Shown: positions 9,991-46,163 of the stretch, in pieces
Numbering within the stretch: the first letter of the stretch is position 1
How the letters are laid out: every line of letters starts with the position of its first letter
DNA from: Octopus bimaculoides
Lineage: Eukaryota
Assembly (NCBI RefSeq): GCF_001194135.2
Contig: NC_068987.1
Coordinates: forward strand, 193,183 to 257,182
Length of the DNA stretch: 64,000 bases
Direction: 5' to 3'
Position numbers and translations under genes: made by a program
Notes under the pieces: model-generated
Told to the model about the DNA's origin: nothing
Database searches by the model: none
Seen by the model: only the letters and a program-made list of their open reading frames with translations

Positions 9991-10574
9991 AATCTGCTAT
10001 GTGTCATCCATATATATTTAATATGCTATACGTATCTGTATAAACCCTATTCCACTATTGATTATTCTACAACATATATTCCACTGTTACCTTTTGTAAT
10101 CAACTCACAGACAGGTAGCATGTCTTCAACTCACACCTGTTTACTTTTTACATGGTATGAATTTCTTGATTTAAGGAGAACAAAAAAAAATCCCCAAATA
10201 TTTTGAAATTGCTTGAAAATTCAGAAGGCCAAGGCGTGTAGGGGGGGGGGCTCCTCATTTCTCTACCAAAAGTATTGTTCATTGGGAACTTTTGCCATGA
10301 AAGTTAGTCATGTTTATGATATACATTTGTAGCTTTTGCAAGGGATATGTCAATTATGTTGTAGATATGCAACTTTTGCATCAACTAAACCAGCGATCCC
10401 TTGAAAACTTCTTTGAAAGTGTATATAACCTGTTTGTAAGATCATGGACCCAGGTTTAAAGAAGCATATATTTTAGTAGTTTTTTATACTTACACTCGTA
10501 CATTTATGAAATGAGGAAGAGTATTTATTATAGAAAATAACAATGTCAAGAAACAAGTAAATCATTGACTACTA

Positions 10575-10940
10575 CAGCTTGCTTACCAACCACATAGTTC
10601 TGGGTTCAGTCCCACTGCGTGGCACCTTGGGCAAGTGTCTTCTACTATAGTCTCAGGCCAACCAAAGCCTTGTGAGTAGATTTGGTAGGCGGAAACTGAA
10701 AGAAGCCCGTCGTATATATATATGTATATATATGTGTATGTGTGTTTGTCCCCACAACATCGCTTGACAACCGATGCTGGTGTGTTTAGGTCCCCGTAAA
10801 TTAGCGGTTCGGCAAAAATGACCGATAGAATAAGTACTAGGCTTACAAAGAATAAGTCCTGGGGTCGATTTGCTCGACTATAGGCGGTGCTCCAGCATGG
10901 CCGCAGTCAAATGATTGAAACAAGTAAAAGAGTAAAAAGA
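10575..10940 (+). mobile_element. tRNA-derived SINE (abundant family)
   Basis: Head gggttcagtcccactgcgtggcaccttgggcaagtgtcttctactatag and tail ggcggtgctccagcatggccgcagtcaaatga recur at 13832, 29430, 34140, 61600 and 63830. Confidence 0.8.
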
Positions 10941-12058: not shown

Positions 12059-12630
12059 TTTATGTCCAACATAATGCGAATGCCTTGTTAGAAAACACCG
12101 AATATTGCGTTATTAGCCATGAGGGAACTTCTCAGATAGGTTCACCAAGCGCCTATAAGAGAGGATCTCTCAAGTCTAATAACGCAGTATTCCATGTTCT
12201 AACAAGGCATCCACATTAAGTTGGATAAACGGGTTGCTTTTTCAGTGGCTGATGTTTTTATGACAGCAGCAATATTTGAGTGGTTTGTATTGCTTACTGG
12301 TTTCGATTCCCTGTTACACAAACAGTTTTCGTCAACTGACATAATATAACAGGTACGTATGTACTATGATTGTTGAGTGTGGTTTACCTCTAAATCTCTG
12401 GCTTGAACCGCAATTGAAAAATGTGATGTTGAGACTACCCATCAAAGGCGACTAGAAGTGGTTTCTCCTTGAGCGGGTAGGTATAGACATATATTTGAAT
12501 ATAAAGAGATTGAAGATTCTTAGAATCTTTGGATATATGTTTATAGATGTCTTGTTCAAAATGCTCAGAGATAAAAAAAAGTTATTAAAATTACGTCAGA
12601 TTATTTGTACCTGGTCACAGGAGTAGTTGT

Positions 12631-13830
12631 ATGGAGTACGAGAAGATGGCTCAGAAGGTGGGAAGCGTCATGAAGTTGTCGCTCGCCAAAGGAATTATGG
12701 GAAGGATGGAGAAGAAAACGATTACCTATAAGGTGTACTCGTTGAAAGGAAAAAAGGCAGAAGTGGAAAAGACGCTGAGGGAACGTACATAACCAAAGGA
12801 AGAAGATATGGGACAATGGTCGTCCAATTTAGGACAGTAGAGGAGGCTGGCGAGTGTGGCGGTGAAAACAGAGGAGGTAGTGCTTCTGCCCACATACCTT
12901 GGAAGAAAGACTTCCAAGGTGAGGGTAGAAGTAATTCCACTGGATATAGNNNNNNNNNNNNNNNNNNNNNNNNNNNNNNNNNNNNNNNNNNNNNNNNNNN
13001 NNNNNNNNNNNNNNNNNNNNNNNNNNNNNNNNNNNNNNNNNNNNNNNNNNNNNNNNNNNNNNNNNNNNNNNNNNNNNNNNNNNNNNNNNNNNNNNNNNNN
13101 NNNNNNNNNNNNNNNNNNNNNNNNNNNNNNNNNNNNNNNNNNNNNNNNNNNNNNNNNNNNNNNNNNNNNNNNNNNNNNNNNNNNNNNNNNNNNNNNNNNN
13201 NNNNNNNNNNNNNNNNNNNNNNNNNNNNNNNNNNNNNNNNNNNNNNNNNNNNNNNNNNNNNNNNNNNNNNNNNNNNNNNNNNNNNNNNNNNNNNNNNNNN
13301 NNNNNNNNNNNNNNNNNNNNNNNNNNNNNNNNNNNNNNNNNNNNNNNNNNNNNNNNNNNNNNNNNNNNNNNNNNNNNNNNNNNNNNNNNNNNNNNNNNNN
13401 NNNNNNNNNNNNNNNNNNNNNNNNNNNNNNNNNNNNNNNNNNNNNNNNNNNNNNNNNNNNNNNNNNNNNNNNNNNNNNNNNNNNNNNNNNNNNNNNNNNN
13501 NNNNNNNNNNNNNNNNNNNNNNNNNNNAATTTAGAAGACCCTCCCTCCCGGTGAAAAAGGTTACGAATGCATGGCGGAGAGAATGGTGTCACTAAATGAT
13601 GGAGAAAGGGGAAAAAGGATTGGACTGAAGGAGAAAAAGCAGTTCGGACCCAGAGGTGGCGAGTGGTGTTACTCAGTGTGGGGTGAGTAGCACACTCTTC
13701 GTAATATCATTTTCAGATATCATATTTTAATTTGTTATTCGTTATATCATATTTTATTTTTATATTTTTAATTGTTATATGTCCCCACATGTGTTGTAGT
13801 GTCCCTTTCTGGCAATTCTAAAAGAAATAA
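12631..13830 (+). mobile_element. ORF1-only non-LTR retroelement, copy B (centre in N gap)
   Basis: KGRRYGTMVVQFRTVEEA aligns with RGRRYATVEVQFTTEEEA of the 24626-25890 element. The 3' end (tccccac..ttgtagtgtccc..aaataaa) is similar, and there is no room for an ORF2. Confidence 0.65.
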
Positions 13831-14832: not shown

Positions 14833-15071
14833 AGTCGTGAGTGGTCGATCCTAACCCTAACCCTAAACACGTATTCATTTGCACACGCGGGTTAGGGATA
14901 GGGTTAGGGATAGGGTTAGGGTTAGGGACAGGGTGAGGGGACAGGGTTGGGGTTAGGGACAGGGTTAGGGATAGGGGACAGGGTTGGGGTTAGGGACAGG
15001 GTTAGGGTTAGGGACAGGGTTAGGGACAGGGTTAGGGATAGGGTTAGGGTTAGGATCGACCACTCACGACT
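14833..15071. repeat. 32-bp inverted repeat enclosing a degenerate telomere-like (TTAGGG/ACAGGG/ATAGGG)n array
   Basis: agtcgtgagtggtcgatcctaaccctaaccct (14833-14864) is the reverse complement of 15040-15071. The G-rich hexamer array spans about 14890-15055. Confidence 0.9.
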
Positions 15072-16107
15072 AGCTAGCGCGGACGCGCNNNNNNNNNNNN
15101 NNNNNNNNNNNNNNNNNNNNNNNNNNNNNNNNNNNNNNNNTCTCATAAGTGTCAGAAAAACGGATATTTTTAAATAAAATTTTCTGCAAAAATCTTTCAG
15201 ATTCGTTAGTTTACGAAAAGAGAGAGAAAAAATGGCGGATGGTCACTGTGACACACTTATGTTGCAAAATGAAATTTGAAGTTATGTAAGAATTAGTACC
15301 CGCCGAGCACTTTTTTTTTTTTTTGCATTAAAGTTCAGTATAATTGCAATTTTCACCATTTAAAAATATCCATTTTTATGAAAATTACGAGGAAACAAAT
15401 TCGAATGAGGTGGACGACACACGTTTATAGTTACTTCGGGTGTTTTATATACGTTGTATGTTTCGATCAATTTGATATCTTGGTCAAACATCAGAAGTGT
15501 AAATAAATGATATAACACACTTCTCTCAGATTTATATTCAAAGAAATCTTCCGAAAACCAAATTGCATTATATTCATCCCAATTTTTGTAAATATTGTTT
15601 TATAGGTCACCATCTGACATAAAAACTAATTTTCGACGGTATTCGAGAAATTCCTGTAAATAACTGCCAAATCATGCACGAGAATAAAGAAAAGGACTCA
15701 GGCCTTAAATAAAGATTGTTTAGAGGTATTAAGATGGTAAAGTACGGTGAAGAAGAAGAATAACAAAAAGCATTCAATTCTATGATTCTGTTTATTTAAT
15801 GCACGTTTGTAGCGGAAAATATATATGGCCATCACCAAATGCATCAATATATATATATATTTAAAAATATAGCATATTTAATGAATCGAACAAAGCTTAT
15901 AATCATTTTAACAATTACATATAAAAAAAATAAATGGAAAATATATTTATCTTTTTAGCAATTTAAGTTTTCAGTAAAATATGTAAAAATTTACGTTTAC
16001 GCCTTCTTAATGTTGCATGCTTGTGTGTGAAAGGGAAAAGCATAGAATTTGTCAAGATGAAAAAGTACTTTACTCTCTTTTAAGGAGCCTGTTCTATGTA
16101 TAATAAA

Positions 16108-16878
16108 CTACATTTGATTAGCTGGAGGCTCAAACTTGAGTTTTTTAGTTAACGTCGACATAATGCAAGGCATTTGTTTGCATTCTTTGAAATCAGGCGC
16201 CTTATCGCTTTCAAATTTCTTCGCAGCAACATGCTTAGAAACAGCTGTTAAAAGTATCATCATTTCGTATGTGGTGCCATATTTTATCAGAATTTTACTT
16301 AGGATGTTAAAAAACCACGACCCTTCATCTTCATTTTTAAAAGACGAATAATCAGGACACGATGAAAAGTAAAGCAGCGTATCTTCCTCAAGTCGATATT
16401 TTGAAACTAGTTCCTCGTTTGCATTAACTTTCTGCTGGTCATCAACATTTATATCAATCTTACTTCCTCGCGATGCTTCCACAAAAATCAATTTAGGTAC
16501 TCCGATTAAAGATGAACATCTATCGGCCTTCAGATAAGAAAGCAAATCGTGAACCTCTGCCACATCCGCACATTCAGGCTTCGTTTCATCACTTTTCATA
16601 ATTACACACAAAATGCAATCAATATCTTTGATATTAAACTCTTTAGAGACCTCACACATTTCTTCGAATGTGTGTACTTTGATATCTGTTTCATTAAATC
16701 CAAGTACTCCTAAGGCATTTCGAATGTTTTCTACTTCTTTTTGGAACGGTCCATCCTTGAAAATGTAGGCTACTCTTCTCTTTTTTTGTGTCATAACATA
16801 ATTATCGAAATATTTCTTTATATCTTCCGCGGTTAATTTGTTTATAGGCATTTTCGAAGAGCCAGTCTTGAAAGACAT
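16108..16878 (-). CDS. Intronless caspase-fold (peptidase C14) protein A, predicted catalytically inactive, no prodomain
   Basis: 256-aa intact ORF with DCILCVIM, PKLIFVEASRG (QACRG with C->S), EGSWFF and KQMPCIMSTLTKKLKF. The SHG His position reads MKSD. AATAAA lies on the minus strand at 15791-15796. Confidence 0.9.
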   Translation of the reverse strand: MSFKTGSSKMPINKLTAEDIKKYFDNYVMTQKKRRVAYIFKDGPFQKEVENIRNALGVLGFNETDIKVHTFEEMCEVSKEFNIKDIDCILCVIMKSDETKPECADVAEVHDLLSYLKADRCSSLIGVPKLIFVEASRGSKIDINVDDQQKVNANEELVSKYRLEEDTLLYFSSCPDYSSFKNEDEGSWFFNILSKILIKYGTTYEMMILLTAVSKHVAAKKFESDKAPDFKECKQMPCIMSTLTKKLKFEPPANQM

Positions 16879-18098
16879 ATTGACTTTATCACATAAGCCA
16901 AACTGTACTTCCTGGTAATCAGCAGTTTCTCTCAGCTCACGTCATTTACACAAAGGCAAATTTCAATAAATCCATTTCCTTCGTTTTGAAAGATATGTAT
17001 CGAATATTTCATGTATTTCCAAAGTTCAAAATCAGTTTAAGACTCAGATGTGTGAGTAGTAATCATTTTAGGATTTTGGTCCCTTTTTGTGAATTACCAG
17101 CAAACAATCGGAGATAGGGCACACATGGCGGAGACCTAACCCGCCCCTTCTACTTTATTTTCTAATTTAAAAAAAAAATTTTTTAACGGAAACACGTTTT
17201 CGGGTTTGATTTCGATTCTGAAAAAAAAATTGGCAAAAATCGCAACTTCACCCACCACCCATTTCTTCATTTTTCAGAATTTTTGGGGGGTGGGGTTGAA
17301 TTACGTAGAAAATACGGAGATTATATAATTCTGAACAAAAATTGTTTGTAAAATTTCAATTTAAAAAAAAAAAAAACATCTCTCCCTTCCCGATTCTACA
17401 ACCTTCAAGCAAGCTATCCACATGCTAGAAATAACAGCCAAATCTCACACAAACTCTGTTTCCCTTTAACTTCCAGAAATTTCGATATACACAGCGATAG
17501 AGGGGTCGGGTTATGTCTCCGTAATGAGACCAGCGAAAATCAAAGCAATATTTGCTGTGAAGAGACAATCAAATCCAAACACGACAATCAATTAAAACTC
17601 TCCCACCCCCTTAATGAATCGAATGTCCGAAAGAAGTTGTTTTTCGTAGACAAAATATAACATCAATTAACATAATCTGTAGGACTTTATTAAGAATGAA
17701 TATTTTCATAAGTTTTGATTAAATCAAAGAATCTATTCGGTCAGCAAATAACTCGATTTCCCTAAGGACCAAAATTGAGTAGAATTGTTTAGTACAGATT
17801 ATTTAAAAGATTGAATAAAGCTTTCGTCATTTTAACAATTAAAACAAATGAAAAATACTAGATTTATCCGTTTAACAATTAAAGTTTTGGATTTGTATTT
17901 TTTATGCGGTTTTTCTATTTTATGTATCATACATGTAAAATACATTAAAAAAATTACGTTTTAGGTTTCAAAAGTCAAACTACGTTTTATCTTGGTGCTA
18001 CGCATGTGTGTGTGTGAAAGGTGGAGCATCAGAATTTTGTCACCGTAAGTCTCAGTAATTAAAATGAAAAACATATTCCATCTTAGCAGACCCTCTAT

Positions 18099-18190
18099 GG
18101 CGAAGGTAAAGAATACGTACACCAGGTGTTTAGGGTTAGTTGTAGGGGTTACGCCGAAAACCGGTGGTGTATGTATTCTTTACTTCCGCC
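18099..18190. mobile_element. ~90-bp hairpin/MITE-like element in the 3'UTR of caspase-like gene B
   Basis: Arms ggcgaaggtaaagaatacgtacacca / tggtgtatgtattctttacttccgcc. A homologous copy lies in the opposite orientation at 26606-26692. Confidence 0.8.
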
Positions 18191-18219
18191 ACCTTCTATA
18201 AAATAAACTTCATTTAATT

Positions 18220-18924
18220 CTAATTACGTTCAAATTTCAGTTGCTTCGTTAACGTTGACATAATATAGGGTATTTGTTCACGGCCTCTGGTTTCCTCTTT
18301 AATACAGTTAGAAACAGCTGCCAAAATTGTCATAATATCATACGTGTTACCATATTCTTCCAGAACTTGCTTTAAAAATTGCATAAAATATGAGCTTCTT
18401 GTGCTATTATTGTCAGACGCACAAACGATGAGCATATCTGCAGTGCGTGGAATTGTATGCTCTTCTTCAAATCCAAAGCGGTCAGCATCGCATTTTTCGA
18501 TAGCATTTTCGTCCTTCGAACAAGGAGTTGTTACTACAAAAATTAATTTGGGTTTACCTTTTAAAGATGGCACTTTTCTAAGTATTTCATTTAACGATAT
18601 AACACTGTCGTATGTTCGGATATAATTTCCTGGGTGCATATAACTTAGAAATGCACAAACAAAGCAATCCACGTCACGATCCTGAAACACTTCATCAAAC
18701 TTTGATATTTCACTGGTTGACATATCAGTGTATTCAGTGATATTATCTGCCAGAAATCCAAGCCTTATTAATGCCTGTTTCAATAAATCTTTGTCTTGGG
18801 ACGAAGCATCACGAGTTCCGTTGTTAGCGAAATTCGCATTGCTGAAAATATGGGCGAAACTGTTTTTTGTCGGCATTGGATCGTAATAACTATAAAAGCC
18901 CATAACATCTTCCTCCGCCGCCAT
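18220..18924 (-). CDS. Intronless caspase-fold protein B, canonical catalytic residues lost, no prodomain
   Basis: Intact ORF; the likely start is MAAEE at 18924 (aaacATGg), with an in-frame non-ATG extension to 18951. Motifs: TRDASSQDKDLL, DCFVCAFLSYM (SHG->SYM), KPKLIFVVTTPC (QACRG->VTTPC), EQIPYIMSTLTKQLKF. Confidence 0.88.
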   Translation of the reverse strand: MAAEEDVMGFYSYYDPMPTKNSFAHIFSNANFANNGTRDASSQDKDLLKQALIRLGFLADNITEYTDMSTSEISKFDEVFQDRDVDCFVCAFLSYMHPGNYIRTYDSVISLNEILRKVPSLKGKPKLIFVVTTPCSKDENAIEKCDADRFGFEEEHTIPRTADMLIVCASDNNSTRSSYFMQFLKQVLEEYGNTYDIMTILAAVSNCIKEETRGREQIPYIMSTLTKQLKFERN

Positions 18925-19701
18925 GTTTAAACGTTTCACCGATGCACACAATTGAGGTCGTCACCCGCAACGGATTAGTATCAGTCAAATAATTGTTTCG
19001 AATTCTGACAGCAAAGCCAGCAACGTTAAGGATCTAGGGTGTAGTCCGTTACATGGATTCCAGTGCTTAAACGGTACTTTTTTTTTATCACCCTCGGAAG
19101 GACGAAAAGTACAGTTAAAATGGACAGAATTTGAACTCAAAACATAAAGAGCCGGAAGTACTTCCGCTATGTATTTTGCCTGACGTAATAACAATTCTAC
19201 CAGATGACCATGCTAAAGAGGTACATTCAACCATTCTTTCACAGAGTGTGTATATAAGTACCAGTTGAGCACTGGGGGGGGGGATGTCGTCGATGTAATC
19301 GACTTAACTACTCCTGTATAGGAGTATAAAGATTGCACACCTCTGCCAAGCCAACGTCAGAGAGAAGGCTCATTAGCACAGTATGAATGTCGAGCTCAAA
19401 TTCACAGCCCCCACGTCAGACCTTCGGTCGAGTGAACATACTGAAGCCCTTGCCCTGCAGTGATCGGAACATGGGCGTCTCCCCAAGTGTACCAACCCTT
19501 AATTTTGTTTCCCTATGTTCTTGAAAATAGATATTTTTTCAGGAAATTTTCTAGAAATCAGCTTCAGATGAGGTAGATTTCGTTTATAATACAATTTGTT
19601 GTGAAAAAGATTCTTCCGTGGGTGAAATTTGTTACAGACACCTTTCAGAGTGTGTAAATTACGATTCTATTTGAATCTGATGTGTGTAAACGGAAACGGT
19701 G

Positions 19702-26149: not shown

Positions 26150-26209
26150 TCCAACTTCCGCTCCCACAATCCATCGCTTCTTCCGCCTTTCTCCACCGCA
26201 AAAATGGCG
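26150..26209 (+). promoter_or_regulatory. EIF3H core promoter: ETS-like ACTTCCG, TCT/5'TOP motif, YY1-like AAAATGGCG over the start codon
   Basis: CCTTTCT at 26186-26192 fits YCTYTYY; aaaATGgcg lies at 26201-26209. EIF3H is a known TOP-class mRNA in mammals. The TSS is inferred only. Confidence 0.55.
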
Positions 26210-26263
26210 ACCAGAAAGTCTGCGAAAGAAAGCGTGATCGATTATGTCCAGATCGACGGACTC
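26204..26263 (+). CDS. EIF3H: eIF3 subunit H exon 1
   Basis: MATRKSAKESVIDYVQIDGL followed by a GTAAGT donor; YVQIDGL|VVLK is the eIF3h MPN N-terminus. Confidence 0.93.
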
Positions 26264-26605
26264 GTAAGTAGTTAACTGTCTTATAATATTATGTCCAGAT
26301 TGATTAATTTGTAAGTAATTAACTGTATTGTATTAGAACTTGATTGATTAATAATTAGCGCTGCTCTGCATCACTAATTTCATTATTTAAGTCCCACGTT
26401 TGTGACAAATAAACGGGAAAATGAGAAAAACTGAATTTAAAATAAAAGAAAAAAGAAACGAGTCCTAGAATCGCAATTACTTTCGATAAAATAGGAATTC
26501 TGAAAAACGAAGGAAAGCGAGTCCTCTCTCCACGAGGCCGGAGGGAAAAACTGTTTTAAATCTCCACGGATTTCTCATCATTAGACACAAAATACTTCAT
26601 CATAA

Positions 26606-26692
26606 GTGGCAGAGGTAAAGAATACGTGCACCACCCGTTTTCGGCCAAACAAAATCCCTAATCACCGGGTTTGCGTAGTCTTTACTTTCGCC
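26606..26692. mobile_element. Second copy of the ~90-bp hairpin element, in EIF3H intron 1
   Basis: Its reverse complement aligns along its length with 18099-18192. Confidence 0.75.
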
Positions 26693-28822
26693 GTTATCAG
26701 AATCGAATACTTAAATACAACAGTATAAAGACAATTTTCTTTTTGATAGAGACATTGTGTACATTAACAAAAGCAACCATGAAAACATTTTTTAAAATGT
26801 CATTGTAGCCAAAAAGGGAACATTATGTTATAATCGGCCGTTATTAATGATTTGGCGTTTATTAGTATTTCCTGCCCACCAATTGTGTTCTTATGTGTAA
26901 AGAAAATCCATCACTGTTGGACTTGTCATGCAACCCCAGGTCAGTCCTTATCGAGCAGAAAAAAGACTCAGATGTGATCCAGTCGTGTTCCTTTCCGCCT
27001 CCCACTTTTTTTTAGGGACTAATGTAGCTACAATTTTCTTGAAGGTGGAGAAGCTCTGCGAAATTTCGAAAGTTCAATAAAAGATTTACACCCGTAGAGA
27101 TTGAATTCAATAACACCCAACAAATAGAATAATATTAATAGAGTATATTATTAACGTGGAGACGGAATGGCCCTGTGGACAGGGCAGTGGAGTCGCGGTC
27201 GTAGGATGCAAGAGTGAAGACTACTGGTTTGGTCATATGTTGTATATGAATGAGGACAGTTGCTTAAAGAAGTGCCAATCGCTGAAAGTGGAGGGTACTC
27301 GTGGAAGCTGCAGACCCTGGCACGTCGCCATCATCTCTCTTTTGCACTCTCACCCTCTCGCTCTGTCTCGTCCTTGATCACTGTCTGTCTCTTTCTCTTT
27401 CCTACTGACTTCGGTAACCATGTATCGCCTCTACAGCAAGACACCTGTTTCTATCCTGTCACACTCTAACCTCTCTTCACCTGGCACAAGACAACCTCCT
27501 CCAATACACCCACTCAAGAATCTTTGTTTTGTGAGTTACCTGGTGACCCTGCCAGAGCTGGTGCCATTTAAAAAGCATCCAGGCCACTCTGTAAAGTGGG
27601 TGGCATTAAGAAGGGCATCCAGCTATAGAAACCATCCCAAAACACAGGACTTGGTGCAGCTCCTGTCAAACCATGGAAAATGGACATGCAATTATGGTGA
27701 TGATGCACACGACACATCACATCTGTGTGAGAGACTTGTACATATGTAAATATTGTAAGCATCTTAGCAGCACCTATTTGCTGATTGTGTTACTGCTTTT
27801 CCTATCTTCACATTCTTCATGGTGCTTTTGATTAGGGAGTCGACCCAAGTCATACATCTTCCTCATTCAGCAGCTTCTCATAATTATTTCTATGCTTCTT
27901 AGCATCAGTGATGTTGAGTGTTCCTTTTCGTAGGAAATGTTACAAAAGACATTCAAATAGAAGTTTGTAAGGAGTGATGTGTGGTGATGCGTGGGACATG
28001 TTGTTTTGTCCTGATTGAGTAGACTTCTGATTTTTGTGGGCGCAGTCTTTTATTCAGACACTGTTTATTGAGAGTTGATATTATTCAATATGTTCTATTT
28101 TTAAAGACAGTAAGGTATGATTTGAGGAATAATTTAGCTGCTATTTGTAGCAGGTGAAGCTGACTGTCTATGGCTCAACTTGCATCGTCGTCATCATTTT
28201 ATATCTGCTTTTCCTGTTGGCATGGATTAGGTTAGACCTTTCCCCACTTGCATTTCATCTAACACCCAAAACGCACGAGGGATGGGGCCACATAAAAAGT
28301 GGTGGTGCTATGTAGAAAATATGCAGTAGACTCTGTAAAATGGTTGGCATTAGGAAGGGCATCCAGCTGTAGAAACTTTGCCAGATCAGACTGGAACCTA
28401 GTGTAGCTCCTGGTCTTGCCAGCTCCTGTCAAAGTGTCCAACCCTTGCCAGTATGGAAAATGGACGTTAAATCATGTTGAATGATGATGATAATGAGATA
28501 TATANNNNNNNNNNNNNNNNNNNNNNNNNNNNNNNNNNNNNNNNNNNNNNNNNNNNNNNNNNNNNNNNNNNNNNNNNNNNNNNNNNNNNNNNNNNNNNNN
28601 NNNNNNNNNNNNNNNNNNNNNNNNNNNNNNNNNNNNNNNNNNNNNNNNNNNNNNNNNNNNNNNNNNNNNNNNNNNNNNNNNNNNNNNNNNTATATATATA
28701 TATATATATATGCAAATGAAATTTATCATGAAGGTAAATAATTTCTTGTCAGTGATTTTGATTTCTTAACGTTTTCTGATTCCTTCCATTCAAATAATGT
28801 TTATTGTTGTGTTTACTTTTAG

Positions 28823-28979
28823 GTTGTGCTTAAGCTAGTTAAGCATTGTGTCGATGAAGGTTCTGGTGGAGCTGATTTTGTGCAGGGTGTCTTGCTGGGG
28901 TTGGTTGTTGATAACCGACTGGAAATAACCAACTGTTTTCCCTATCCACGACATCAAGAAGAAGAAGAACTTGATGAGT
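28823..28979 (+). CDS. EIF3H: eIF3 subunit H exon 2
   Basis: AG/GT bounded, 157 nt; [42 protein letters not shown]. Confidence 0.96.
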
Positions 28980-30757
28980 GTAAGTAGAAATCCTATTTCG
29001 TATGTGTTCTAGACAAAGCTGCCCTTCCTGGGCCTCTTAAAACTAATGATCTTGCAAACCTATGTTGGTTACTGTAGATATTACATGTGTAACTCTACAA
29101 GTGTTGTATACTTTGTGTTAAAGCTATACATTTGTTCTGCAGCATGTTCTAGAATCAGAAACAAACACTGCTTGTGCATCTGGTACCCGTGTCAGTGGTA
29201 CGTAAAGAGCACCCATGCTGGAGGCATGTAAAGAGCACCTGTTGCACCTATGGTTGGTGTTTGGGAGAGCATCCAGCTGTAGAAACCATGCCAAACCAGG
29301 CTGGAACCTAGCACAGTTCTCTGGCTTACCAGTTCCAGTCAAACCATCTAACCCATGCCAGCATGGAAAGCAGATGTTAAATGATGACCACATACACACA
29401 TTATATGTATAAGCACAAATGTGGCTGCATAGTAAGAAGTTTGCTTCCCAACCACGTGGTTCGAGATTCAGTCCCACTTCATGGCACTTTGGGCAAGTGT
29501 CTTCTATCAAAGCCTTATTAGTGGATTTGGTAGATGGAAATAGAAAGAAGCCTGTCATATATATGTGTATGTGTGTGTCTTTGTGATTGTGCTTGTCATC
29601 CATCAATTAACAACCAGTGTTGGTTTGTCATAAACTAGTGGCTCAGCAAAAAGAAACTGATAAAATAAGCATTAGGTGAAAAAAAAATTGTAGTAGGGTT
29701 GATTTGTTTGACTAAACCCTTTGAAGGCAGTGCCACAGCATGGCCACAATCTAATGACGGAAGCAGAAAATAAAAGATGTATGGATCCGCTTGGCCTCGT
29801 GGTTAGGGTGTTCAGTTCCTAGATTGGGCAGCACATTGTGTCCTTGAGCAAGGCACGTCAGTTTACAATGCTCCAATCTACTCGGCTGAAAATGAGTTCT
29901 TGCAAGAACTTTCGCCTGTTTCCAGATTAGACACGTTCTCTTGAAAGACTGGAAAGGAAGGACTTTTTGTCTGAGATACAAACACCCTCCCCACACACAC
30001 ACAACAGGTTTCTTCCAGGTTCTATCTATCAAAACCACCACAAAGTTTTGGTTGACATAGGGCTCTAGTAGAAGACATTTACCCAAAGTACCATGCAGTG
30101 GGACTGAACTTGAAATTGTGTGGTTGGGAAGCAATTTACCAGCTGGTTAAATAAATCTTTCACCTTTTGCTAAAAAAGACTTTTATATGTGTGTGTGTGT
30201 AAATAGATATATATTTTTCAAAAGAAAATTATATATATATAATAGATGAAGACAACATTCTGCTCAGATGGTTAAGAAGTTAGCTTCCTCATTGCAAAGA
30301 GCTGGGTTCAGTTCCACTGCATAGTATCTTTGGAACCAACTTTTTAAGTCTAGCTTCAAGTATATCAGAGAGTGTTTCTGTAATTCAGCCACTCAATCTA
30401 GTTGTTAAATGTTGAATATATTGTTGTGAGGGTAGCTATATATATATAATGTATATATGTATGTGTGTGTGTAGTTGCATGACTTAGTGGTTAGGTTATT
30501 GTGCTCACAATTGCTAGATCGTTGGTTCATTTGTGGACCAAGTGGTGCATTGTGTTTTCAAGCAAAATACTTCATTTCATGGTTGCTCCTGTTCACTCAG
30601 CTGCAAATGGGTAATACTGCAATAGAATAGTTTTCCTGCCAGGGAAATGGTCACCTGTTTGTCAAGCAAGTGGGGTGGTATCATTCAAAGGCTGAGACAA
30701 TGCAAAGTGCATTGTGATCAGAGATGTATAACTGCATCCGATAATCTGGTCAATACT

Positions 30758-30805
<48 letters not shown>

Positions 30806-31047
30806 GCACGGTTTATTTGCGATCAGAGTTGTTCAGCAACTGAGGTGCTACTGTATATATAATGGGCACTCATGTACCCACGCATTCCACCTTCCCATTA
30901 TAACAGGGTTTCTTAATCACCACCATCTTCTGCATAACCTCATTACACCCCACCTTTTTTTGCTGTTTACAGTTGGTGCATGTCTGTCTTCTATGTCTTC
31001 TCATTGTTGTTATTAGATTTTAATGACTCTAAATATATTATTTTCAG

Positions 31048-31215
31048 TTCGTTACCAGATTGAGATCTTCCGTAACCTGCGCCATGTCAATATTGACCAT
31101 CTCCATGTTGGTTGGTACCAGAGTACATATTTTAATTCCTTCATCAATCGTACTCTTGTCGACTCCCAGTATAACTACCAACACTCCATTGAAGAGTCAG
31201 TTGTGCTTATTTATG
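31048..31215 (+). CDS. EIF3H: eIF3 subunit H exon 3
   Basis: 168 nt; [25 protein letters not shown]...[12 protein letters not shown]; donor GTGAGT. Confidence 0.97.
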
Positions 31216-32119
31216 GTGAGTCATTATTCATGTTTTTTTATTTATTGTTTTTCAATTTCTACCACTCACAGAAATTTCTAGGGTTTTCATAAGCAGCTGA
31301 TGATTTCAGCTGAGCTGGACCCTTCCTTTTAGACCCTACCCCCACCCCTTCCAAAGCACTAGTAACCTTGAACTCTTTACTGTGACTACCGTTATTTTGT
31401 GTTCCTGCTGTAGAAATTGCTGTTTGCTCCAGTTCAGCAAACTGGAAACAGTTTTTGTGGCTAGTGATAAGAAGGGCCAACACAATGATGCATCCTGGTC
31501 ATGATAATTAGCTGTAAAAATGACCCCAGGCTAACTGCGATCAAGGTGGACTTGTGTGATTCATAAATCTAATAAACTGGTTATGTCTTTGTTTGAGATC
31601 ATATTTTTTATGACTTAATTTAGGAAGGGAATGAGATCACGACTTTTGTTTTAGGGTCTCTGTGACAGGTGGGAGAAAAGAAAGAATATAAACTTCTTGT
31701 GAGCACTTGGTCATGGTAGGCACCCTGAGGAGGTGGTAGGGTTAACAAGAACAGTCCCTCTAACAGGCTTTCCGACAGATTCCTTCGACCAAATTCTGCT
31801 GAGGAGGTTTTGTCAAGGCTATAGTAAAAGACAAGCTACCGTGCTGTGTGATTTATAATTACATGGTTCATCATCATCATCATCATCGTTTAACGTCTGC
31901 CTTTCATGCTGGAATGGGTTGGACGATTTGACAGGAACTGGTCAGAACTGCACCAGACTTTTGTGTCTGTTTTGGCAAGGATTTTACAGCTGGATGCCCT
32001 TCCAAACACCAACCACTTTACAGTGTGGACTGGGTGCTTTTAAGTGGCACCTGCACTGACAGGGTCACCAAGTCTTTGCAAGACGAAGAACTACTTTCAA
32101 GTTTGGTGGAGCCCTGGTG

Positions 32120-32570
32120 AACCCCTACCTGTACACTGAATTTATCACTGTATTCATGGCTGACTCCCACCTTACTGACAACACCTCTCTGCATGGCTTG
32201 TACAGCTCTAGAAAGCCACTCCTCTACTTCTACCTTCCTTAGAGACCACCATATAACACAGTGGGGGACTCTGTCGAAAGCTTTTCCCAGGTTGACGAAG
32301 GGTCAGTACAATGACTTACTTTTGGTCAAGTACTTTTCATGCAGTTGTCGCATTGGGAAGATGGCATCTGTGGTACTCTTCCCAGACACAAAACGAAACT
32401 GCATCTCATCTAGTTTAATTCTATTCCTAATCAATTGAGCTATAACTCTCTCAGTAACTTTCTTGACTTTGTCTAGCAATTTAATACTTCTGCAGTTGTT
32501 TCTATTTGTATTAGCTCTACACCATCTACTGCCCAGCTCTGTACCATATTTGCCCTTTATCACATAGCTA
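32120..32570 (-). mobile_element. RTE LINE RT fragment in EIF3H intron 3
   Basis: RSIKLLDKVKKVTERVIAQLIRNRIKLDEMQFRFVSGKSTTDAIF. Confidence 0.8.
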
Positions 32571-32913
32571 GCTCTCTATATCTCTACCCCCCCCCCCCTA
32601 TTTCTGATGTNNNNNNNNNNCTCTACCCCCCCCCCCCTATTTCTGATGTAACTGCTTGCTAACTTTAGTTCCTCCTTCTCCTCTGCTGCCACCACCAACA
32701 TCAACCTGCAGCAGCAGCCTACTTTCTGTGCTGTTATGGGTTGGACAGATTGTCACAATCTAAGTCAGTTCTTATTTCGAGTCACTGTCCTTCAAAACGT
32801 GTCAAGGACCTCATCCCAAAGTTTCTATGTTGATATCTCACCAGCTCAACCCCAAACCCTGACTGAAGCAGTTTAAACTAAAACTATTTTTTTTGTTTTG
32901 AAATTTTCCTTAG

Positions 32914-33163
32914 ATCCCCTGAAAACCTCTCAAGGGTTTTTATCCCTGAAAGCGTACCGTCTCACTGATGCCATGATGGAGTTTTACAGGGAAGGTGAAT
33001 TCACCCCTGAATCAGTGAACAGGCTGAAGCTAAACTTTGAAAACATGTTTACTGAGATTCCCCTCGTTATCAAGAATTCTCATCTTGTTAATGTGCTTTT
33101 GTATGAACTTGAACAGAAGAAAAACAATGGAGAAAACTACCAATTTCTAGATTTGGCTACAAG
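32914..33163 (+). CDS. EIF3H: eIF3 subunit H exon 4
   Basis: 250 nt; DPLKTSQGFLSLKAYRLT...IPLVIKNSHLVNVLL...QFLDLAT; AG/GT bounded. Confidence 0.96.
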
Positions 33164-33229
33164 GTATGACACTTGTTTATATTTAACTTTTTTCTTTGCG
33201 TGTGTGTGTGTGTGCTTGTATGTTATTTA

Positions 33230-33890
33230 GATCCTCAAATGTAGAAGCTCTCTGAACTTTGCCCAAGCTGTTCGTATTCTAGCGACTTCCTCCACTACTG
33301 CTAACTTGGTCACCTAGGTAACAAAAGCTATCTACTGCTTCTAAGATTTCCCTGAGCATTTGAGGCAGTCTATTGTCTGCTCATATTGTACCTGCTCACT
33401 TGCCACACACAAAGACACTATTCTCAGTTAACTTTCCTGTGACATTGCTACACCTCTTATGTATCCAAAGCTTGCACTGGGTACAATGGGTGGAGTTTCC
33501 ACCAACACCCTTCTCACATATTGAACAGGGTCATCTCCTGAAGAGATTTGTGATTTGTCTATTTTCCTACTTACTAGGGCTTTGGCTTTTGATAAATTAA
33601 CTCTAAGGCTCTTAGATACCAAGCCTTGCTTCCACATCTGAAATTTCTTCTCTCGCTCAGTTTGTGATTCAGCTATAAGAACAAGGTCATCAGCATAAAG
33701 GAGCTCCCAGGGACAGCCGATCTCGAATTCTACTGTTAAGGCCTGGAGGACTAAGATAAACAAGAACTGAACCTTGGTGAACCCCTACCTGTACAGTGAA
33801 TTCATTGCTATACTCATTGCCAACCATCACCTTACTTTCAGCATCCCTGTACATGACCTCACCAACCACTCATCTATCCCTAGCTTCTGC
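33230..33890 (-). mobile_element. RTE LINE RT fragment in EIF3H intron 4
   Basis: GCPWELLYADDLVLIAES (YADD catalytic motif). Confidence 0.85.
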
Positions 33891-35046
33891 CTTGACCACT
33901 AAATAAGGGAGCAGGGGATCTTGTCAGAGGCTTTCTCCATGTTGATTAAAGCCAGCTACAGAGGTTTATTTTTATCATTTTGTTTAAACACCAAGAAATT
34001 TGATTAAAGTCAAATTCTAGTTATGTTTGCCCCATTTCCTTTTACCCAAGGTAGCATAAGTAAAGGTACCCATTGTCATGATGGGTATCATCACACTTGT
34101 ATTATTATGAGGAATTAACTATGGTTAAGGTACAGACATGAGTGTGTGGTTAGGAAATTTGCTTTCCAACCACATGTGTGGCACTTTGGGCAAGAAGTGT
34201 CTTCTACTATATAACTCTGAGCTGAATAAAAGCTCTTTGTGTGAGTTTGGTAGACAGAAACTGAAAGAAGCCTGTTGTATGTGCCTGTGCTTACATATGC
34301 ATTTCTGAGAAAATCACTCAGCTTCACATGGTCATGTTACTGTCACTTTCTTTTACTCTTTGCCTGACATCAAACCTCCTATATGCATTCTTCCATTTCT
34401 ATGTTAATCATCATCATCATCGTTTAACGTCCACTTTCCATGCTAGCATGGGTTGGACGATTTGACTGAGGACTGGTGAACCAGGTGGCTACACCAGGCT
34501 CCTCTTTTCTATATAATGTAAAATATGACAATAAAAACCAACCTACTGACCAACTTTTTTTTATATTAGCAATTTTTCGATGGGGATAAGCCTTGCTGCA
34601 GCATGGTAACGCAATTCTAATGATTAGTTGAAGAGCTGTTATCATATATTACTGTGAAATACTTGACAACAGTTCTGATGACTAATTCTTTGACACCAAC
34701 CTAAGGCCAATCCTGCTTCTCTGATACAAACTTCTTGTTTTAAAGCGATATTAATTAAAGCTTCGTGTTAATTTATGTTCTAAACACCAGTAAATTAATA
34801 ATGACAAAGCTATTTTGCTAAATTCATTTTCTAAATTAATTGTGACAAAAGGAAGTGTTTTTTAACAGAAATATGGTAACATTAGGGTTAAAGGAACAAC
34901 TATTATCATGTGAAGTATTGTAAGTGAGACCTGATGGTCAATCATAATGTGTTCTGTACTACACTAGGTGTGTAGCCCTGTGTACTGTTGAAATTGTTGC
35001 TTACTGAAAATAACTGACTATATATATTGTACGTTTCTATTTGTAG

Positions 35047-35182
35047 CTCCATGTTAGAGAAGAATTTGCGTCAGTTGATTGAATGTGTTGATGATGTGGC
35101 AGCTGACACCAACAAATATTTGACGTTCCAGAAACACTTCCAAAGGCAGCAACAAGCCAAGCAACAGTATCTTCACAAAAGG
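35047..35182 (+). CDS. EIF3H: eIF3 subunit H exon 5
   Basis: 136 nt; SMLEKNLRQLIECVDDVAADTNKY...QQQAKQQYLHKR; phase consistent with neighbours. Confidence 0.95.
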
Positions 35183-36520
35183 GTAACCCTCTCCAGGACA
35201 TTCCTTCTCTTCAAATTTAATTAATCCTTTTAAATAGCAATCACTGTCCTTTACTCGTTAGAAACTACGCAAATTAAAATGGTACTATTTACATTGAAAA
35301 CCTCACCAAAATTTTGACATTGAAATTAGGTTGTTGTGAATTTAAGGGTGAGTGTGGCTGGCCCTTATTTTTGGAAAAATCTGAACTCTGAATGCAAAGA
35401 AGCAGAACCAAGTTGCAGTTCCCAGAGTAAGGGGTCGAGGGAGCTGTTTGCAATGGGACAGACTGTGAAGTAGGAGGGTGGCATCTGTGTTCATTTATGC
35501 ATGTGAAGTTAGTGCAATTGACGCTTCCCGACTTGCTTGTTTTGTCTGTGTTGGAAATTAAGAGGAGATGGTGCATTGGCAGAACAACTGACAAAACATG
35601 TCTTGTGCTTACAATCTCATTCAGGTTAGTTTTTGCCTTTCATTCTTCTGTGGTTGATAAAATAAAGACTCAGTCAAGAACTTGGGTCAGTATCATTGAT
35701 ACCACCTCTCCAACCAAATTTCAGGCATTGTGCCTAAATTAGAAGAAAAAGAAAAAAAAAATGAATCACCCCCATCATCATCATTATTTAATATCCATTG
35801 TCCAGGCTGGCATGGGTTATACAGTTTGACAAGAGCTGGTAAGCTGAGGGGCTGCTCCAGACTCCAGTCTTATTTGGCATGGTTTCTACAGATGGATGCC
35901 CTTCCTAATAATTCTTATTTTGGCACAGGGTCAGCAATTTTAGGGTTGTGGTAGGGCTACTTGATTACATCAACCCTAATACTTAACTAATGCTCGTTGT
36001 ATTGACCCTGGGAAGGTGAAAGGCAAAGTTGACTTCAGTGGAATTGAAACCCTGTGTGATGAGCTGGTGGAAACGGTGTGAAGCTTTTGTCCAACTCGAA
36101 TAATTCTGTGAGCGTTGTTCTGCTGCTGGTGGTGGTGATTGGTATTGGGAGGATGGATTGGCAGAAGCGTTTCTGTTGGACAAAATGGTGTGTGCTGCTT
36201 GTTTGTATGCCTTATGTTCTGAGTTCAAATTTCACAGTGGTCTGCTTTGCCATTCCTCCTACTCTGGGGTCAACAAAGTAAAATACATGTCAAATATTGG
36301 AGTCAGTGTAATCAGCAAAACGTGTCCCTCTGAATTTCTGGCCATATGCTTACCTTAGAAACAATTCTTCAGGTTGGTAGAGCTTGGATGAACTGTTAAT
36401 GCTGGGCAAAAGGCCTTGCAGTATTTCAAATTGACTTTTGGTCTCCTTTCCTCAAAATTGCTAGCCTTGTGTGAAAAATCAGAATTACTATTGTTATTAT
36501 TAATATTGTTATAATTTCAG

Positions 36521-43300: not shown

Positions 43301-45143
43301 GGAAACTAGGCTCCAGTCTGATTTTGGCTTGGTTTCTACAGCTGAATGCCCTTCCTAACACCAGAGACGCCAAGGGTGTAAGCGGATGTCTTTTATGTGC
43401 CACCATCATGGGTGCATTTTACATGTCATTGGCACTGGCCATGAGTCTTGTTCTCAAGCACAGCAAACTGCCAAAGGTCTCTCCGATCATTTGTCATTGC
43501 CTCGGTGAGACCCAACATCCAAAGATCATAGCTTCACCACCTCATCCTATGTCTTCCTGGGTCTACCTCTTCCGTGTGTGTGGTGCTTTGTGTATCCTTC
43601 ACATTAAATGACTTTGTAAACGAGTGTCACCATTGTACAAACGAGGTTGTTTCCAGTCTTCCATGGGAAACATGTCTGGTCTTGAGTAAATATTACCTTG
43701 CACAGAAATAAGGGGAGAATGGCTACAGGAAGCCCACCTGGCCAGAGAAAACTTGGCATCAATAAATTTCTTGTGATCAATGCAAACATGGAAAAGTAGA
43801 GATTCAACAACAACAACGACGGTGGGGGGGGGGGAAGTCAATTACATCGACTGGTACTTATTTCATTGACCCTGGAAGGTAAAGTCAACCTTGGGTGAAT
43901 TTGAACTCAGGATGTTAAGCATTTCGCTTGTGCTAATGATTCTGCTAGTTCACTGCCTTATAATAATAATAATAATAATAATAATGATCCTTTCTACTAA
44001 AGGCACAAGGCCTGAAACTTTGGTGGGAGGGGAGGGCAAGGCGATTACACGGATACCTAATTTATTGACCCCGAAAGGATGAAAGGCAAAGTCCAGCAGA
44101 ATTTGAACTCAGAACGTAAAGACAGACGAATTTTGCCGCCTTATAATAATAAAAATAATAATCCTTTCTACTGGCCTCAAATTTGGGGGAAGGGATTAAG
44201 TCGATTACATTGACCTCAATGCATAACTGGTACTTAATATATCGACCCCGAAAGGATGAAAGGCAAAGTCGAACCCGGTGGAATTTGAACTCGGAACGTA
44301 GCGGCAGACGAAATATCGCTAAGCATTTCGCCCGGCGTGCTAACGATTCTCTCAGCTCACCGCCTTATAATGATGATGATGATGATAAAGCTATACCAGC
44401 AGACACTGAAGCTGCCTAGTTGCAGTATTGAACCTGAGATCACCTTAGTGGAAATCAAATTTGTTTAAGCTGCAGTCCATGCCCTTTGCTTTTCATTAAA
44501 AGATAAAGTAGTAGCGATATGCTGAGGTCTATGTTATTAATAAGAGGAGTTGGGGCATAGTTTGCTCGTTGCGAGGAAAAGAAGTCGTTATAATTGCTGT
44601 AAAAAAATGATGAGGAAACCAGCAGATCTGTGAACCAGTGGTTGGTGTTATATACGAATTGCTGTAGCTCTTTTTTTTTTTTTCAATTTAGTCTGGGTTG
44701 TGTATGTGTGGGTAACGGCGCCATCGTTTATATGTAAAATGCCCGTCAAGCTCACAGGCTGCAGCCTTGGAAGCATTCCGTTAGAGCACTTCTGTCGAAC
44801 TGAATGCTTCCCATTCATTTACAGAGAACAGCCCCCGCCATCTAGCGACAAATGGGAGGTAACTTAATGTAAACAATGCGTGAGTAAGTGTTGCCATGTG
44901 AACAAGAGGAGATAAGTGGAGGCGAAAAGTGAGTTGTGAGAGGTGGTTGGTGAGGTGAGGGGCAGGGAGGGCCACGAATCTCTCACATTCAGAAACAGTT
45001 TGCGTGTCCGATAACAACAAAAGTTGTGAGAGGCCTCTGCCGTCTCCGTCGCTCTACTTTGTCGATTTTGTAAACTTTTAAACTCTTCTCCCCCCCCCCC
45101 CAACTCATGTTAAACCTTGTTTGCCAACAAATTAATTGCAAAA

Positions 45144-46163
45144 ATGACGAACTTACCAACAAACTTACGAACTTCCAAACATGTCTTTTACATAGTTTTG
45201 TTCATTATAGCTATTTATTTTCTCGTTATGGATATTATTCTCTACGTTACACTACAGAACAATGTACTCTGCGAAAAGAATGACGGCATGTACTCTCCCT
45301 TCCGTCCTCTAACTGTGAAACTTCTGATGACCGACCCCTTCGACCACTGGATTACGAGTCCACTCATGGAATACTTTGATGAACTCACCGGATTCAGCGA
45401 TATTTTTTATTTCATTACTCCAAACATGATCAGTATTTTCCACATGTGCCTCACTATATTGGCTGGTAAACTGGTCAGTTCACCTTCCTTACACACCCGC
45501 CGGATTGCTGTGTTAGTCTTTCAGATGCACGGTCTGTTGGACACGCTTGATGGAATAGTTTACCGTGCACGAACAGGTAAAGGGCATTTATTTCAATCGC
45601 ATCGCTCTACTGTGGGTTACGTTATCGACGGTGCGTGTGATACTATTGGTGGAACGGCGCTCTGTATAGGACTGGCTGTTAATTTGTGTCGTAATCCTCC
45701 GTCTAAAAGACAGCAAAATACCTTACCTTGGACAAAAACTGACCTGCTGATGGACAGTCCAAACGGGGCTGCTACAACTACTGAAAAACAAAATGGACAT
45801 GTGAGCAAATTCACGGCTTTTTTTCGTTGCTTTTCATTTGGTATGCAATTACTTCTGGCGGCTGCCATGTGGGACAAAAGTGTAGCCAGACTCTCAGCTA
45901 TCCTTCAAGTCCCCATAAAAGATTCCTCTCTAGCTGCTCTTCAGGTAGAATCGTTACACTCTGCCAGTACATCTATTATATTTCTGTTGTGGCGATATTC
46001 TTCAGCCATAGCTTTACTTCAGATGGTTTTGTTTGCTATTTTTATAGATAAAGTCTGGGAATTCCTGACATTCATCCTTTACATCGGCTGGCCCGTCTTG
46101 ATTGCTGTGATTTTCGTTACTGAACTCCACATAAGAGCTTTACGAGAGAAAATGCACATGTAA
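45144..46163 (+). CDS. Intronless CDP-alcohol phosphotransferase, ceramide phosphoethanolamine synthase (CPES)-like, 339 aa
   Basis: First ATG at 45144 (aaaATGa). It has an N-terminal TM helix, KLLMTDPFDHWI, ITPNMIS, the CDP-AP motif DTLDGIVYRAR...GYVIDGACD and several C-terminal TM segments, the architecture of Drosophila Cpes. Confidence 0.85.
   Translation: MTNLPTNLRTSKHVFYIVLFIIAIYFLVMDIILYVTLQNNVLCEKNDGMYSPFRPLTVKLLMTDPFDHWITSPLMEYFDELTGFSDIFYFITPNMISIFHMCLTILAGKLVSSPSLHTRRIAVLVFQMHGLLDTLDGIVYRARTGKGHLFQSHRSTVGYVIDGACDTIGGTALCIGLAVNLCRNPPSKRQQNTLPWTKTDLLMDSPNGAATTTEKQNGHVSKFTAFFRCFSFGMQLLLAAAMWDKSVARLSAILQVPIKDSSLAALQVESLHSASTSIIFLLWRYSSAIALLQMVLFAIFIDKVWEFLTFILYIGWPVLIAVIFVTELHIRALREKMHM

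Follow-up and report, generated by a model that had tools for sequence, protein, structure and literature searches.

We have identified a tandem pair of genes, here called A and B, that encode folded, non-catalytic caspase homologues which are conserved and abundant as mRNA. They lie in a 64,000-nucleotide stretch of Octopus bimaculoides DNA (the window; chromosome CM046607.1 of assembly GCA_001194135.2, approximately 0.2 Mb in from the chromosome start). It is hypothesized, with a probability that we put at roughly 0.4, that A and B are old tandem genes of a single exon each, belonging to a family of short-prodomain, effector-like (caspase-3/7-type) proteins that is restricted to Octopus, and that they pair as non-catalytic partners with active members of the family, or with each other, to modulate activation. 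A preliminary description of the window had reported the pair accurately, and the observation is real; the interpretation attached to it is partly supported.

The two open reading frames (ORFs) are co-oriented and separated by 1.34 kb, with EIF3H as a neighboring gene, and both are intact at the positions where the preliminary description had placed adjacent caspase cores beside EIF3H (Table 1). Each clears the curated cut-off of 21.4 bits for the Pfam family Peptidase_C14 (PF00656), A with 102 bits (E 4.8e-29, profile positions 24-232 of 233) and B with 81 bits (E 1.2e-22, profile positions 3-232 of 233). The two proteins share 28% pairwise identity (E 1e-19), and their closest relatives in the PDB are human caspase-7 and caspase-3 (E ~ 2e-27). 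AlphaFold2 (AF2) models of A and B have mean predicted local distance difference test (pLDDT) scores of 80 and 75 and predicted template modeling (pTM) scores of 0.79 and 0.77, respectively. Foldseek searches with these models returned caspase-7, -3 and -6 as the top matches (template modeling score 0.7-0.83, E 1e-15 to 1e-19). By profile and by fold, A and B are homologues within the caspase superfamily (MEROPS C14A / Pfam PF00656). No signal peptide was found in either sequence, and no extra domain in a Pfam scan.

Catalytic motifs were called from alignments with family members and with caspase-3 and -7; the residue numbers Arg64, Gln161 and Arg207 refer to the caspase-3 sequence, which was aligned to A and B. 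In A, MKSDE (residues 94-98; codons 16599..16585) stands where LSHGE is expected, replacing the dyad His with Ser, and EASRG (residues 134-138; codons 16479..16465) stands where QACRG is expected, replacing Cys with Ser and Gln with Glu. The same sites of B read LSYMH (residues 93-97; codons 18648..18634; His to Tyr) and VTTPC (residues 131-135; codons 18534..18520; Cys to Thr and Gln to Val). The S1 pocket has been altered as well. Approximately 11-12 residues of loop L1, including the S1 Arg (caspase-3 R64), are deleted from A, which also has SFK in place of SWR and Lys, Asn or Asp, depending on the species, at the Arg207 equivalent. B retains the L1 Arg (GTRDAS); its SWR loop is six residues shorter and the Arg207 loop is deleted. 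This alignment upholds every residue-level statement of the preliminary description, which had noted both the different ways in which the dyad was lost in the two proteins and the shortened loops.

Both His and Cys are lost in every A and B orthologue examined. In B orthologues, Tyr stands for the His and Thr or Ser for the Cys, and the residue at the His position of A orthologues varies by species (Ser, Asn, Arg), which argues against a substitute catalytic residue. Judged from the aligned residues, A and B therefore lack the dyad and the S1 set (Arg64/Gln161/Arg207) of an active caspase. Because the dyad and the Asp-binding S1 pocket are both lost, no cleavage should be possible, and neither protein is expected to be an Asp-directed cysteine protease. 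As the dyad loss is common to all orthologues, inactivation is older than these species, and the genes persisted after it.

The preliminary description had proposed a search for syntenic orthologues, and these were found. O. vulgaris (OX597820.1, locus L002) has the same B-then-A order with both ORFs intact, at 10001-10747 (B) and 12296-13009 (A), and both are likewise intact and syntenic in O. sinensis (CM016865.1, locus L009), with A at 12308-13021. Transcript contigs of a third octopod (SRR11869385 and SRR11869391; loci L003 and L004) contain intact A and B orthologues at 62-66% identity.

Pairwise ratios of nonsynonymous to synonymous substitution rates (dN/dS) were calculated by NG86, LWL85, YN00 and maximum likelihood, and the majority fell at 0.45-0.7. 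For A, the ratio was 0.85-1.19 when O. bimaculoides was compared with O. vulgaris or O. sinensis, and mostly 0.45-0.6 against the third octopod (maximum 0.75, LWL85). Values for B among three divergent species were 0.48-0.74, and those for a pair of active-looking paralogues, P0030/P0007 (family members are cited by our catalog numbers), were 0.60-0.77. Protein distances between O. bimaculoides and O. vulgaris are approximately 0.33-0.35 for A and B and 0.20-0.21 for P0030/P0007; the pair P0004/P0005, compared with O. sinensis, also gives 0.20-0.21. The whole family is fast-evolving, with A and B at the fast end.

In simulations of 0.2 neutral substitutions per site, the probability of an ORF remaining free of stops was 0.007 for A and 0.016 for B, and over the whole tree this probability is far lower than the single-branch value of at most 0.016. 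All gaps in the coding sequences (CDSs) are in-frame, two in A and five in B, as compared with 22 indel events in 1.2 kb of A-B intergenic DNA; nucleotide identity is 83% in CDS A, 80% in CDS B and 75% in the intergenic DNA. Differences occur in 16-23% of columns at family-conserved positions versus 38-47% at variable ones (Fisher p 1e-5 to 5e-3), so that change is 2-2.5 times rarer at the conserved positions. In counts by lineage, synonymous changes are in significant excess in the O. vulgaris and third-octopod lineages for A and in the O. vulgaris lineage only for B. Because the ORFs remain open by the simulation test, indels are few and in-frame, and family-conserved positions are spared, neutral evolution of A and B can be rejected on the evidence of these alignments.

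Eight O. bimaculoides runs yielded transcript contigs that follow the genome colinearly over A and B, with no gap within either CDS, and three RNA-seq runs of 2026 contained no canonical splice joint among their raw reads in the A/B region. The colinearity of contigs and raw reads extends over both 5' leaders. In-frame stops lie within the same exon 22 codons upstream of the ATG of A, as the preliminary description had noticed, and 14 codons upstream of that of B. Since these stops share the exon and the RNA is unspliced, no prodomain exon (CARD or DED) can be joined on; DED and CARD are accordingly absent from A and B, with no second Pfam domain and no upstream coding exon in the RNA. Both proteins have an N-peptide of approximately 20-35 aa before the beta1 strand, as in effector caspases. 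The earlier term "prodomain-less" is thus correct in regard to a CARD or DED exon, and "short prodomain" is the better wording. That description had also named a lack of expression, or transcripts with a spliced-on prodomain and proteolytic activity, as grounds for abandoning its proposal; both genes are transcribed, and their RNA is colinear.

Gene A has its own transcription start. Weaker, longer A 5' isoforms, or read-through from B, reach approximately 17500, and lower coverage runs unbroken from B into A, which points to some read-through or long-5'-untranslated-region (5'UTR) transcripts. In raw reads of run X21, CDS depth was 450-600 for A and 80-160 for B, with 110-310 reads at EIF3H exon junctions. 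Relative to EIF3H, mRNA of A is thus approximately 2-4x and that of B approximately 0.5-1x, which marks A as highly expressed. Contig depth reached maxima of 1461 (A) and 681 (B), and A and B were present together in every run.

Profile searches covered 5.8 billion proteins and 1.84 billion representatives. Close relatives were found only in Octopus species and Logan contigs. At E < 1e-30 there were only eight representatives, among them a few multi-domain caspase models from fish and insects (31-36% identity), and the next matches were generic animal caspases at no more than 38% identity. As far as public data show, the family appears to be restricted to Octopus, and the earlier view of the pair as lineage-specific stands, save for those few fish and insect models.

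Proteins of the family are uniformly p20+p10 and about 235-310 aa long. The CDS is a single exon in six of six members checked, from three species (A, B, P0004, P0016, P0007 and P0030), and gene span equals CDS length in P0004, P0016, P0007, P0030 and P0010. The O. bimaculoides paralogues P0004 (XP_014775611.1), P0033, P0030, P0031, P0016 and P0019 are 36-47% identical to A, and Octopus paralogues resemble A and B in architecture, single-exon CDS, N-peptide motif and beta6 strand. Several members (P0003, P0007, P0030, P0031 and P0015-18) look active, with SHG, QACRG and both S1 Arg residues. P0004, P0005 and P0013 keep SHG and have Q/EASRG (Cys to Ser), while P0008 and P0029 have SCS or SYS with QACRG kept, and Cys at the L1 Arg. 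P0019 has NYD and EPSR, with both dyad residues lost, and a deleted L1 loop. At least three other lineages of the family, to judge by these motifs, have independently lost His and/or Cys; among the members examined, both dyad residues are lost only in A, B and P0019. The L1 loop is missing from A and P0019, whereas B lacks part of the SWR loop. P0030 and P0016 are located approximately 35 kb apart on CM046628.1, and P0004 is located near P0033 on CM046619.1 (loci L005, L006 and L008).

A neighbor-joining tree places the A orthologues and the B orthologues in separate clades, each with a bootstrap value of 100%, that are not sisters. Their 3'UTRs are homologous in two blocks (B 17888..17800 with A 15971..15875, and B 18042..18002 with A 16054..16015), which indicates that A and B were split by a DNA-level tandem duplication and not by two retropositions. 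With all six checked members being single-exon, any retroposition would be older than the family. No obvious poly(A) or target-site-duplication scars were seen in the sequence at A and B, although no systematic search was made. A and B are thus old paralogues, neither a young pair nor individual retrocopies, and the likeliest history is that one old retroposition or intron loss founded the family and was followed by DNA-level duplications, including the A/B tandem. The earlier suggestion of a pair born from a retrocopy is contradicted by the tree, by the family-wide single exon and by the shared 3'UTR homology.

Two conserved features bear on what the proteins might do. The first is the beta6 strand, which forms the center of the dimer interface in caspase-3/7 structures. 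It reads KQMPCIMSTLTKKLKF in A (16179..16132) and EQIPYIMSTLTKQLKF in B, is among the best-conserved segments, and has a consensus (xIMSTLxKxLKF) that is near-identical in A, B and the active-looking paralogues. The second is the intersubunit linker of B, NAIEKCDAD..GFEEEHT, which is invariant in three divergent species (IEKCDAD at 18501..18481) and is modeled as disordered by AF2 (pLDDT < 50, residues 138-156). Its IEKCD↓A, where the arrow marks the cleavage point, aligns with the caspase-3 processing site IETD↓S and with the family consensus VEKxD↓A. This invariance and alignment suggest that B is probably cut at IEKCD↓A by an active caspase. The linker cleavage site has been lost from A.

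These features, with the presence of A and B in every run, lead us to favor a pairing mechanism. They are also hints toward the dominant-negative or heterodimeric action that the preliminary description had proposed. A and B probably act by binding, and would do so stoichiometrically as non-catalytic partners with a caspase fold. The beta6 interface would pair them with active family members, or with each other, and pairing would tune the amount of active homodimer that is formed or processed. B itself is probably cut by an active caspase, as cFLIP-L is, or competes as a substrate, while A, its site lost, would stay a single chain.

Several points weigh against this hypothesis. Effector caspases are stable homodimers with largely independent active sites, so that a dead partner would not necessarily be inhibitory, and cFLIP-L is able to activate caspase-8. 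The A:B contig depth ratio holds at 1.55-2.6 in eight runs over a 33-fold range of depth, so that the two transcripts co-vary; without library-size normalization, however, this shows that they occur together and not that they are strictly co-regulated. Between O. bimaculoides and O. vulgaris, dN/dS of A is approximately 1, with equal change at the three codon positions. The O. bimaculoides lineage has no synonymous excess and, at small counts, is indistinguishable from neutral. RNA run X23 has five coding single-nucleotide polymorphisms (SNPs) that are fixed against the reference, and every one is nonsynonymous (5/5), with no synonymous change seen. Either weak constraint or diversifying selection may be at work in O. 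bimaculoides. Taken together, the high dN/dS and these SNPs point either to selection of an arms-race or immune type or to constraint that is weak at positions outside the core. The case for selection made in the preliminary description is therefore borne out in part: open ORFs and heterogeneity between site classes are non-neutral, but the dN/dS near 1 that it would have counted against itself was found for A between O. bimaculoides and O. vulgaris (0.9-1.1).

To our knowledge, pseudo-caspases with a demonstrated role are few, namely cFLIP in vertebrates and CSP-2/3 in nematodes, and all act on initiator-type activation. Here, a whole effector-type family includes several members that have been independently inactivated and kept as open, highly transcribed genes. 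Like A and B, human cFLIP-L (CFLAR) has a complete caspase-like domain (p20-p10) in which the catalytic Cys and the catalytic His are both missing. It is a regulator that pairs with an active caspase, and the partner caspase cleaves its intersubunit linker (PMC7586951), a cleavage comparable with the one proposed at the invariant IEKCD↓A of B. However, cFLIP-L has tandem DEDs, belongs to the caspase-8/10 initiator clade, is recruited to the death-inducing signaling complex and has a monomeric initiator as its partner, whereas A and B have no DED or CARD, are nearest to caspase-3/7/6 and are single-exon genes. C. elegans CSP-3 and CSP-2 are inactive, lineage-specific paralogues without a recruitment prodomain that bind the CED-3 zymogen and restrain its auto-activation. 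CSP-3 is essentially a small subunit only, whereas A and B hold both subunits in one chain, and the sequence affinity of CSP-2/3 to A and B is at the level of the caspase superfamily only. With no DED or CARD and a place on the effector branch, A and B are best regarded as analogues of cFLIP and CSP and not as members of those groups.

The closest described phenomenon is the expansion of caspase-3/7-like genes in bivalves. These expansions are lineage-specific and partly tandem, and many of the proteins lack His and/or the QACRG Cys (Vogeler et al. 2021, PMC7836458). Among them, Cg3A has the same His-to-Tyr change as B; the function of these bivalve proteins is unknown (PMC7836458). The bivalve expansions belong to class Bivalvia and are of independent origin, and many oyster members are p20 only, in contrast to the uniformly p20+p10, single-exon-CDS octopus family. 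If A and B do regulate active paralogues, dead effector caspases would be recruitable as regulators, and the pair would be a starting point for studying how apoptosis or immunity is controlled in a cephalopod-specific manner.

A more far-reaching version of the hypothesis, which we consider speculative and rather unlikely, is that one retroposed effector caspase gave rise to a private, fast-evolving layer of Octopus cell death or immunity that comprises active enzymes and at least five independently inactivated members. Within this layer, A (uncleavable) and B (cleavable at IEKCD↓A), both abundant and expressed together, would join into a heterodimer dedicated to braking or sensing the active paralogues. 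The cFLIP/caspase-8 system would thereby gain its first effector-type equivalent.

Among other explanations, the one that we rank first, though we hold it to be doubtful, is that A and/or B are decoys or sponges that bind caspase-binding factors (IAP-type or pathogen-encoded inhibitors), or that B is a competitive substrate through IEKCD↓A, in either case setting a threshold for apoptosis or the immune response. Such a role would be consistent with mRNA that is very abundant relative to a housekeeping gene, with the invariant cleavage-type motif in the linker of B and with the arms-race-like speed of the whole family, including the active-looking P0030/P0007 (dN/dS 0.6-0.77). IAP families are also reported to be expanded in molluscs (PMC8917759, PMC7831173). 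However, XIAP-type linkers and most protein inhibitors dock in the substrate groove and the S1 pocket, both of which are degraded in A as well as in B, and A has no cleavage site. Nor did an IAP-binding motif come to light, although no search aimed at one was made.

It is similarly doubtful that A and B are neofunctionalized proteins of caspase fold with a job unrelated to caspase regulation, such as an epithelial or secretory structural or binding protein, or an immune recognition protein or scaffold. What is best conserved is the caspase core, the beta6 strand and the caspase-type site of B, all of which point to continued interplay with caspases, and neither a signal peptide nor an added domain is present. 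In favor of a new job are an mRNA level that is unusually high for a regulator and active-site loops that have been remodeled differently in A and in B. Many caspase-3-, -7- and -8-like proteins occur in the O. vulgaris skin-mucus proteome, which would also fit. Five UniProt accessions of the family, including A and B orthologues, were not found in the supplements of that study (PMC11431876).

We regard it as highly unlikely that A and B are transcribed, functionless relics with ORFs that have stayed open by chance or because constraint was relaxed only recently. The A dN/dS of approximately 1 without third-position excess, the neutral-looking changes specific to O. bimaculoides and the SNP count of 5 nonsynonymous to 0 synonymous would all be expected of relics. 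Against them stand ORFs that are intact in four species at a stop-free probability of at most 0.016 for one 0.2-substitution branch, the lack of frameshifts beside 22 intergenic indels, the avoidance of family-conserved positions by substitutions and the significant synonymous excess in the O. vulgaris and third-octopod lineages, in addition to dyad-loss states that are common to all species and thus indicate an old loss with later persistence. Least likely of all, and very unlikely, is that the proteins are still proteases with a non-canonical nucleophile such as the Ser of EASRG: this Ser is kept in all A orthologues and recurs in P0004, P0005 and P0013, which retain His, but A lacks the dyad His, has a variable residue (Ser, Asn or Arg) in its place and retains none of the three S1 residues (Arg, Gln and Arg), the dyad of B is replaced by Tyr and by Thr or Ser, and Cys-to-Ser mutants of caspases are standard dead controls.

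Several database annotations should be corrected. A and B proteins are already present in public databases as predicted entries, and literature searches found no paper describing this octopus family or the A/B pair. The names "caspase-1-like" and "caspase-7" imply an activity that these proteins cannot have. The O. vulgaris model CAI9725199.1 (P0006; locus L002, 12323-20198) joins the first ~125 aa of A to a gag-like zinc-knuckle ORF 6.5 kb downstream and is probably chimeric, as the full A ORF is intact at 12296-13009. Its gag-like C-terminus was considered as a real A exon and rejected as an annotation artefact, since it is not present in the window and no O. bimaculoides read has such a splice. 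The skin-mucus proteome supplement (PMC11431876) assigns a peptide of this gag-like part to O. bimaculoides A0A0L8H7Z8 ("Caspase family p20"). In O. sinensis, gene A has no annotation of its own and is situated within the 16.8-kb RefSeq gene LOC115213954, which encodes B. Isoform X2 of LOC115213954 has an alternative C-terminus (…KFERN).

Table 1. Positions of genes A and B, their transcript features and variants, and the expression yardstick EIF3H in the window
Feature	Position	Strand	Remarks
Gene A CDS	16108..16878	-	256 aa, ATG start, intact pseudo-caspase ORF
Gene B CDS	18220..18924	-	234 aa from ATG (243 aa from upstream TTG), intact pseudo-caspase ORF
Gene A proximal 5' leader and main transcription start	16879..16996	-	RNA depth rises ~4-fold between the 16870-16996 bin and the CDS
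Gene A 3'UTR	15778..16107	-	proximal 3' ends ~16000; distal poly(A) tail at 15778 with AATAAA upstream of the tail
Gene B 5' leader and approximate transcription start	18925..19280	-	RNA depth falls from ~100 to ~5 past 19283; in-frame stops, SINE-like repeat
Gene B 3'UTR	17800..18219	-	hairpin 18086..18204; blocks resembling the A 3'UTR; lower read-through coverage onward to A
Gene A variants (X23)	16192; 16199; 16304; 16778		D229E; A227E; I192T; R34T, respectively
Gene B variant (X23)	18906		V7I
EIF3H, span in window	26199..36520	+	transcription start 26199-26212; junctions 26263>28823, 28979>31048, 31214>32913, 33161>35045, 35181>36520, all GT..AG

The hairpin in the 3'UTR of B (minus strand) is stable, with a minimum free energy of -43.5 kcal/mol (z -4.9 versus shuffles). 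Within it, all three raw-read runs contain low-level T>C changes on the plus strand (A>G in the mRNA) at positions 18179 and 18180, which are candidates for A-to-I editing. The B transcript carries at its 5' end a repeat resembling a short interspersed nuclear element (SINE), at approximately 19040-19280. This repeat gives rise to branches in the assembly graph, to joints of the "opposite strand" type (19125/19254) and to numerous loose ends, and leaves the precise transcription start of B blurred. Loose-end sequences at 19145 and 19149 were considered as upstream exons and rejected; they are absent from the window and originate from this repeat and not from splicing. A short run of N (an assembly gap) is located between low-complexity repeats at approximately 14950-15010, 1.1 kb downstream of the 3' end of gene A. 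Elsewhere in the window, an ORF of 348 aa at 45117-46163 on the plus strand has a weak match to CDP-alcohol phosphatidyltransferase (Pfam E 5.5e-5, 24 bits against a 22-bit cut-off) and may be a single-exon gene or a large exon.

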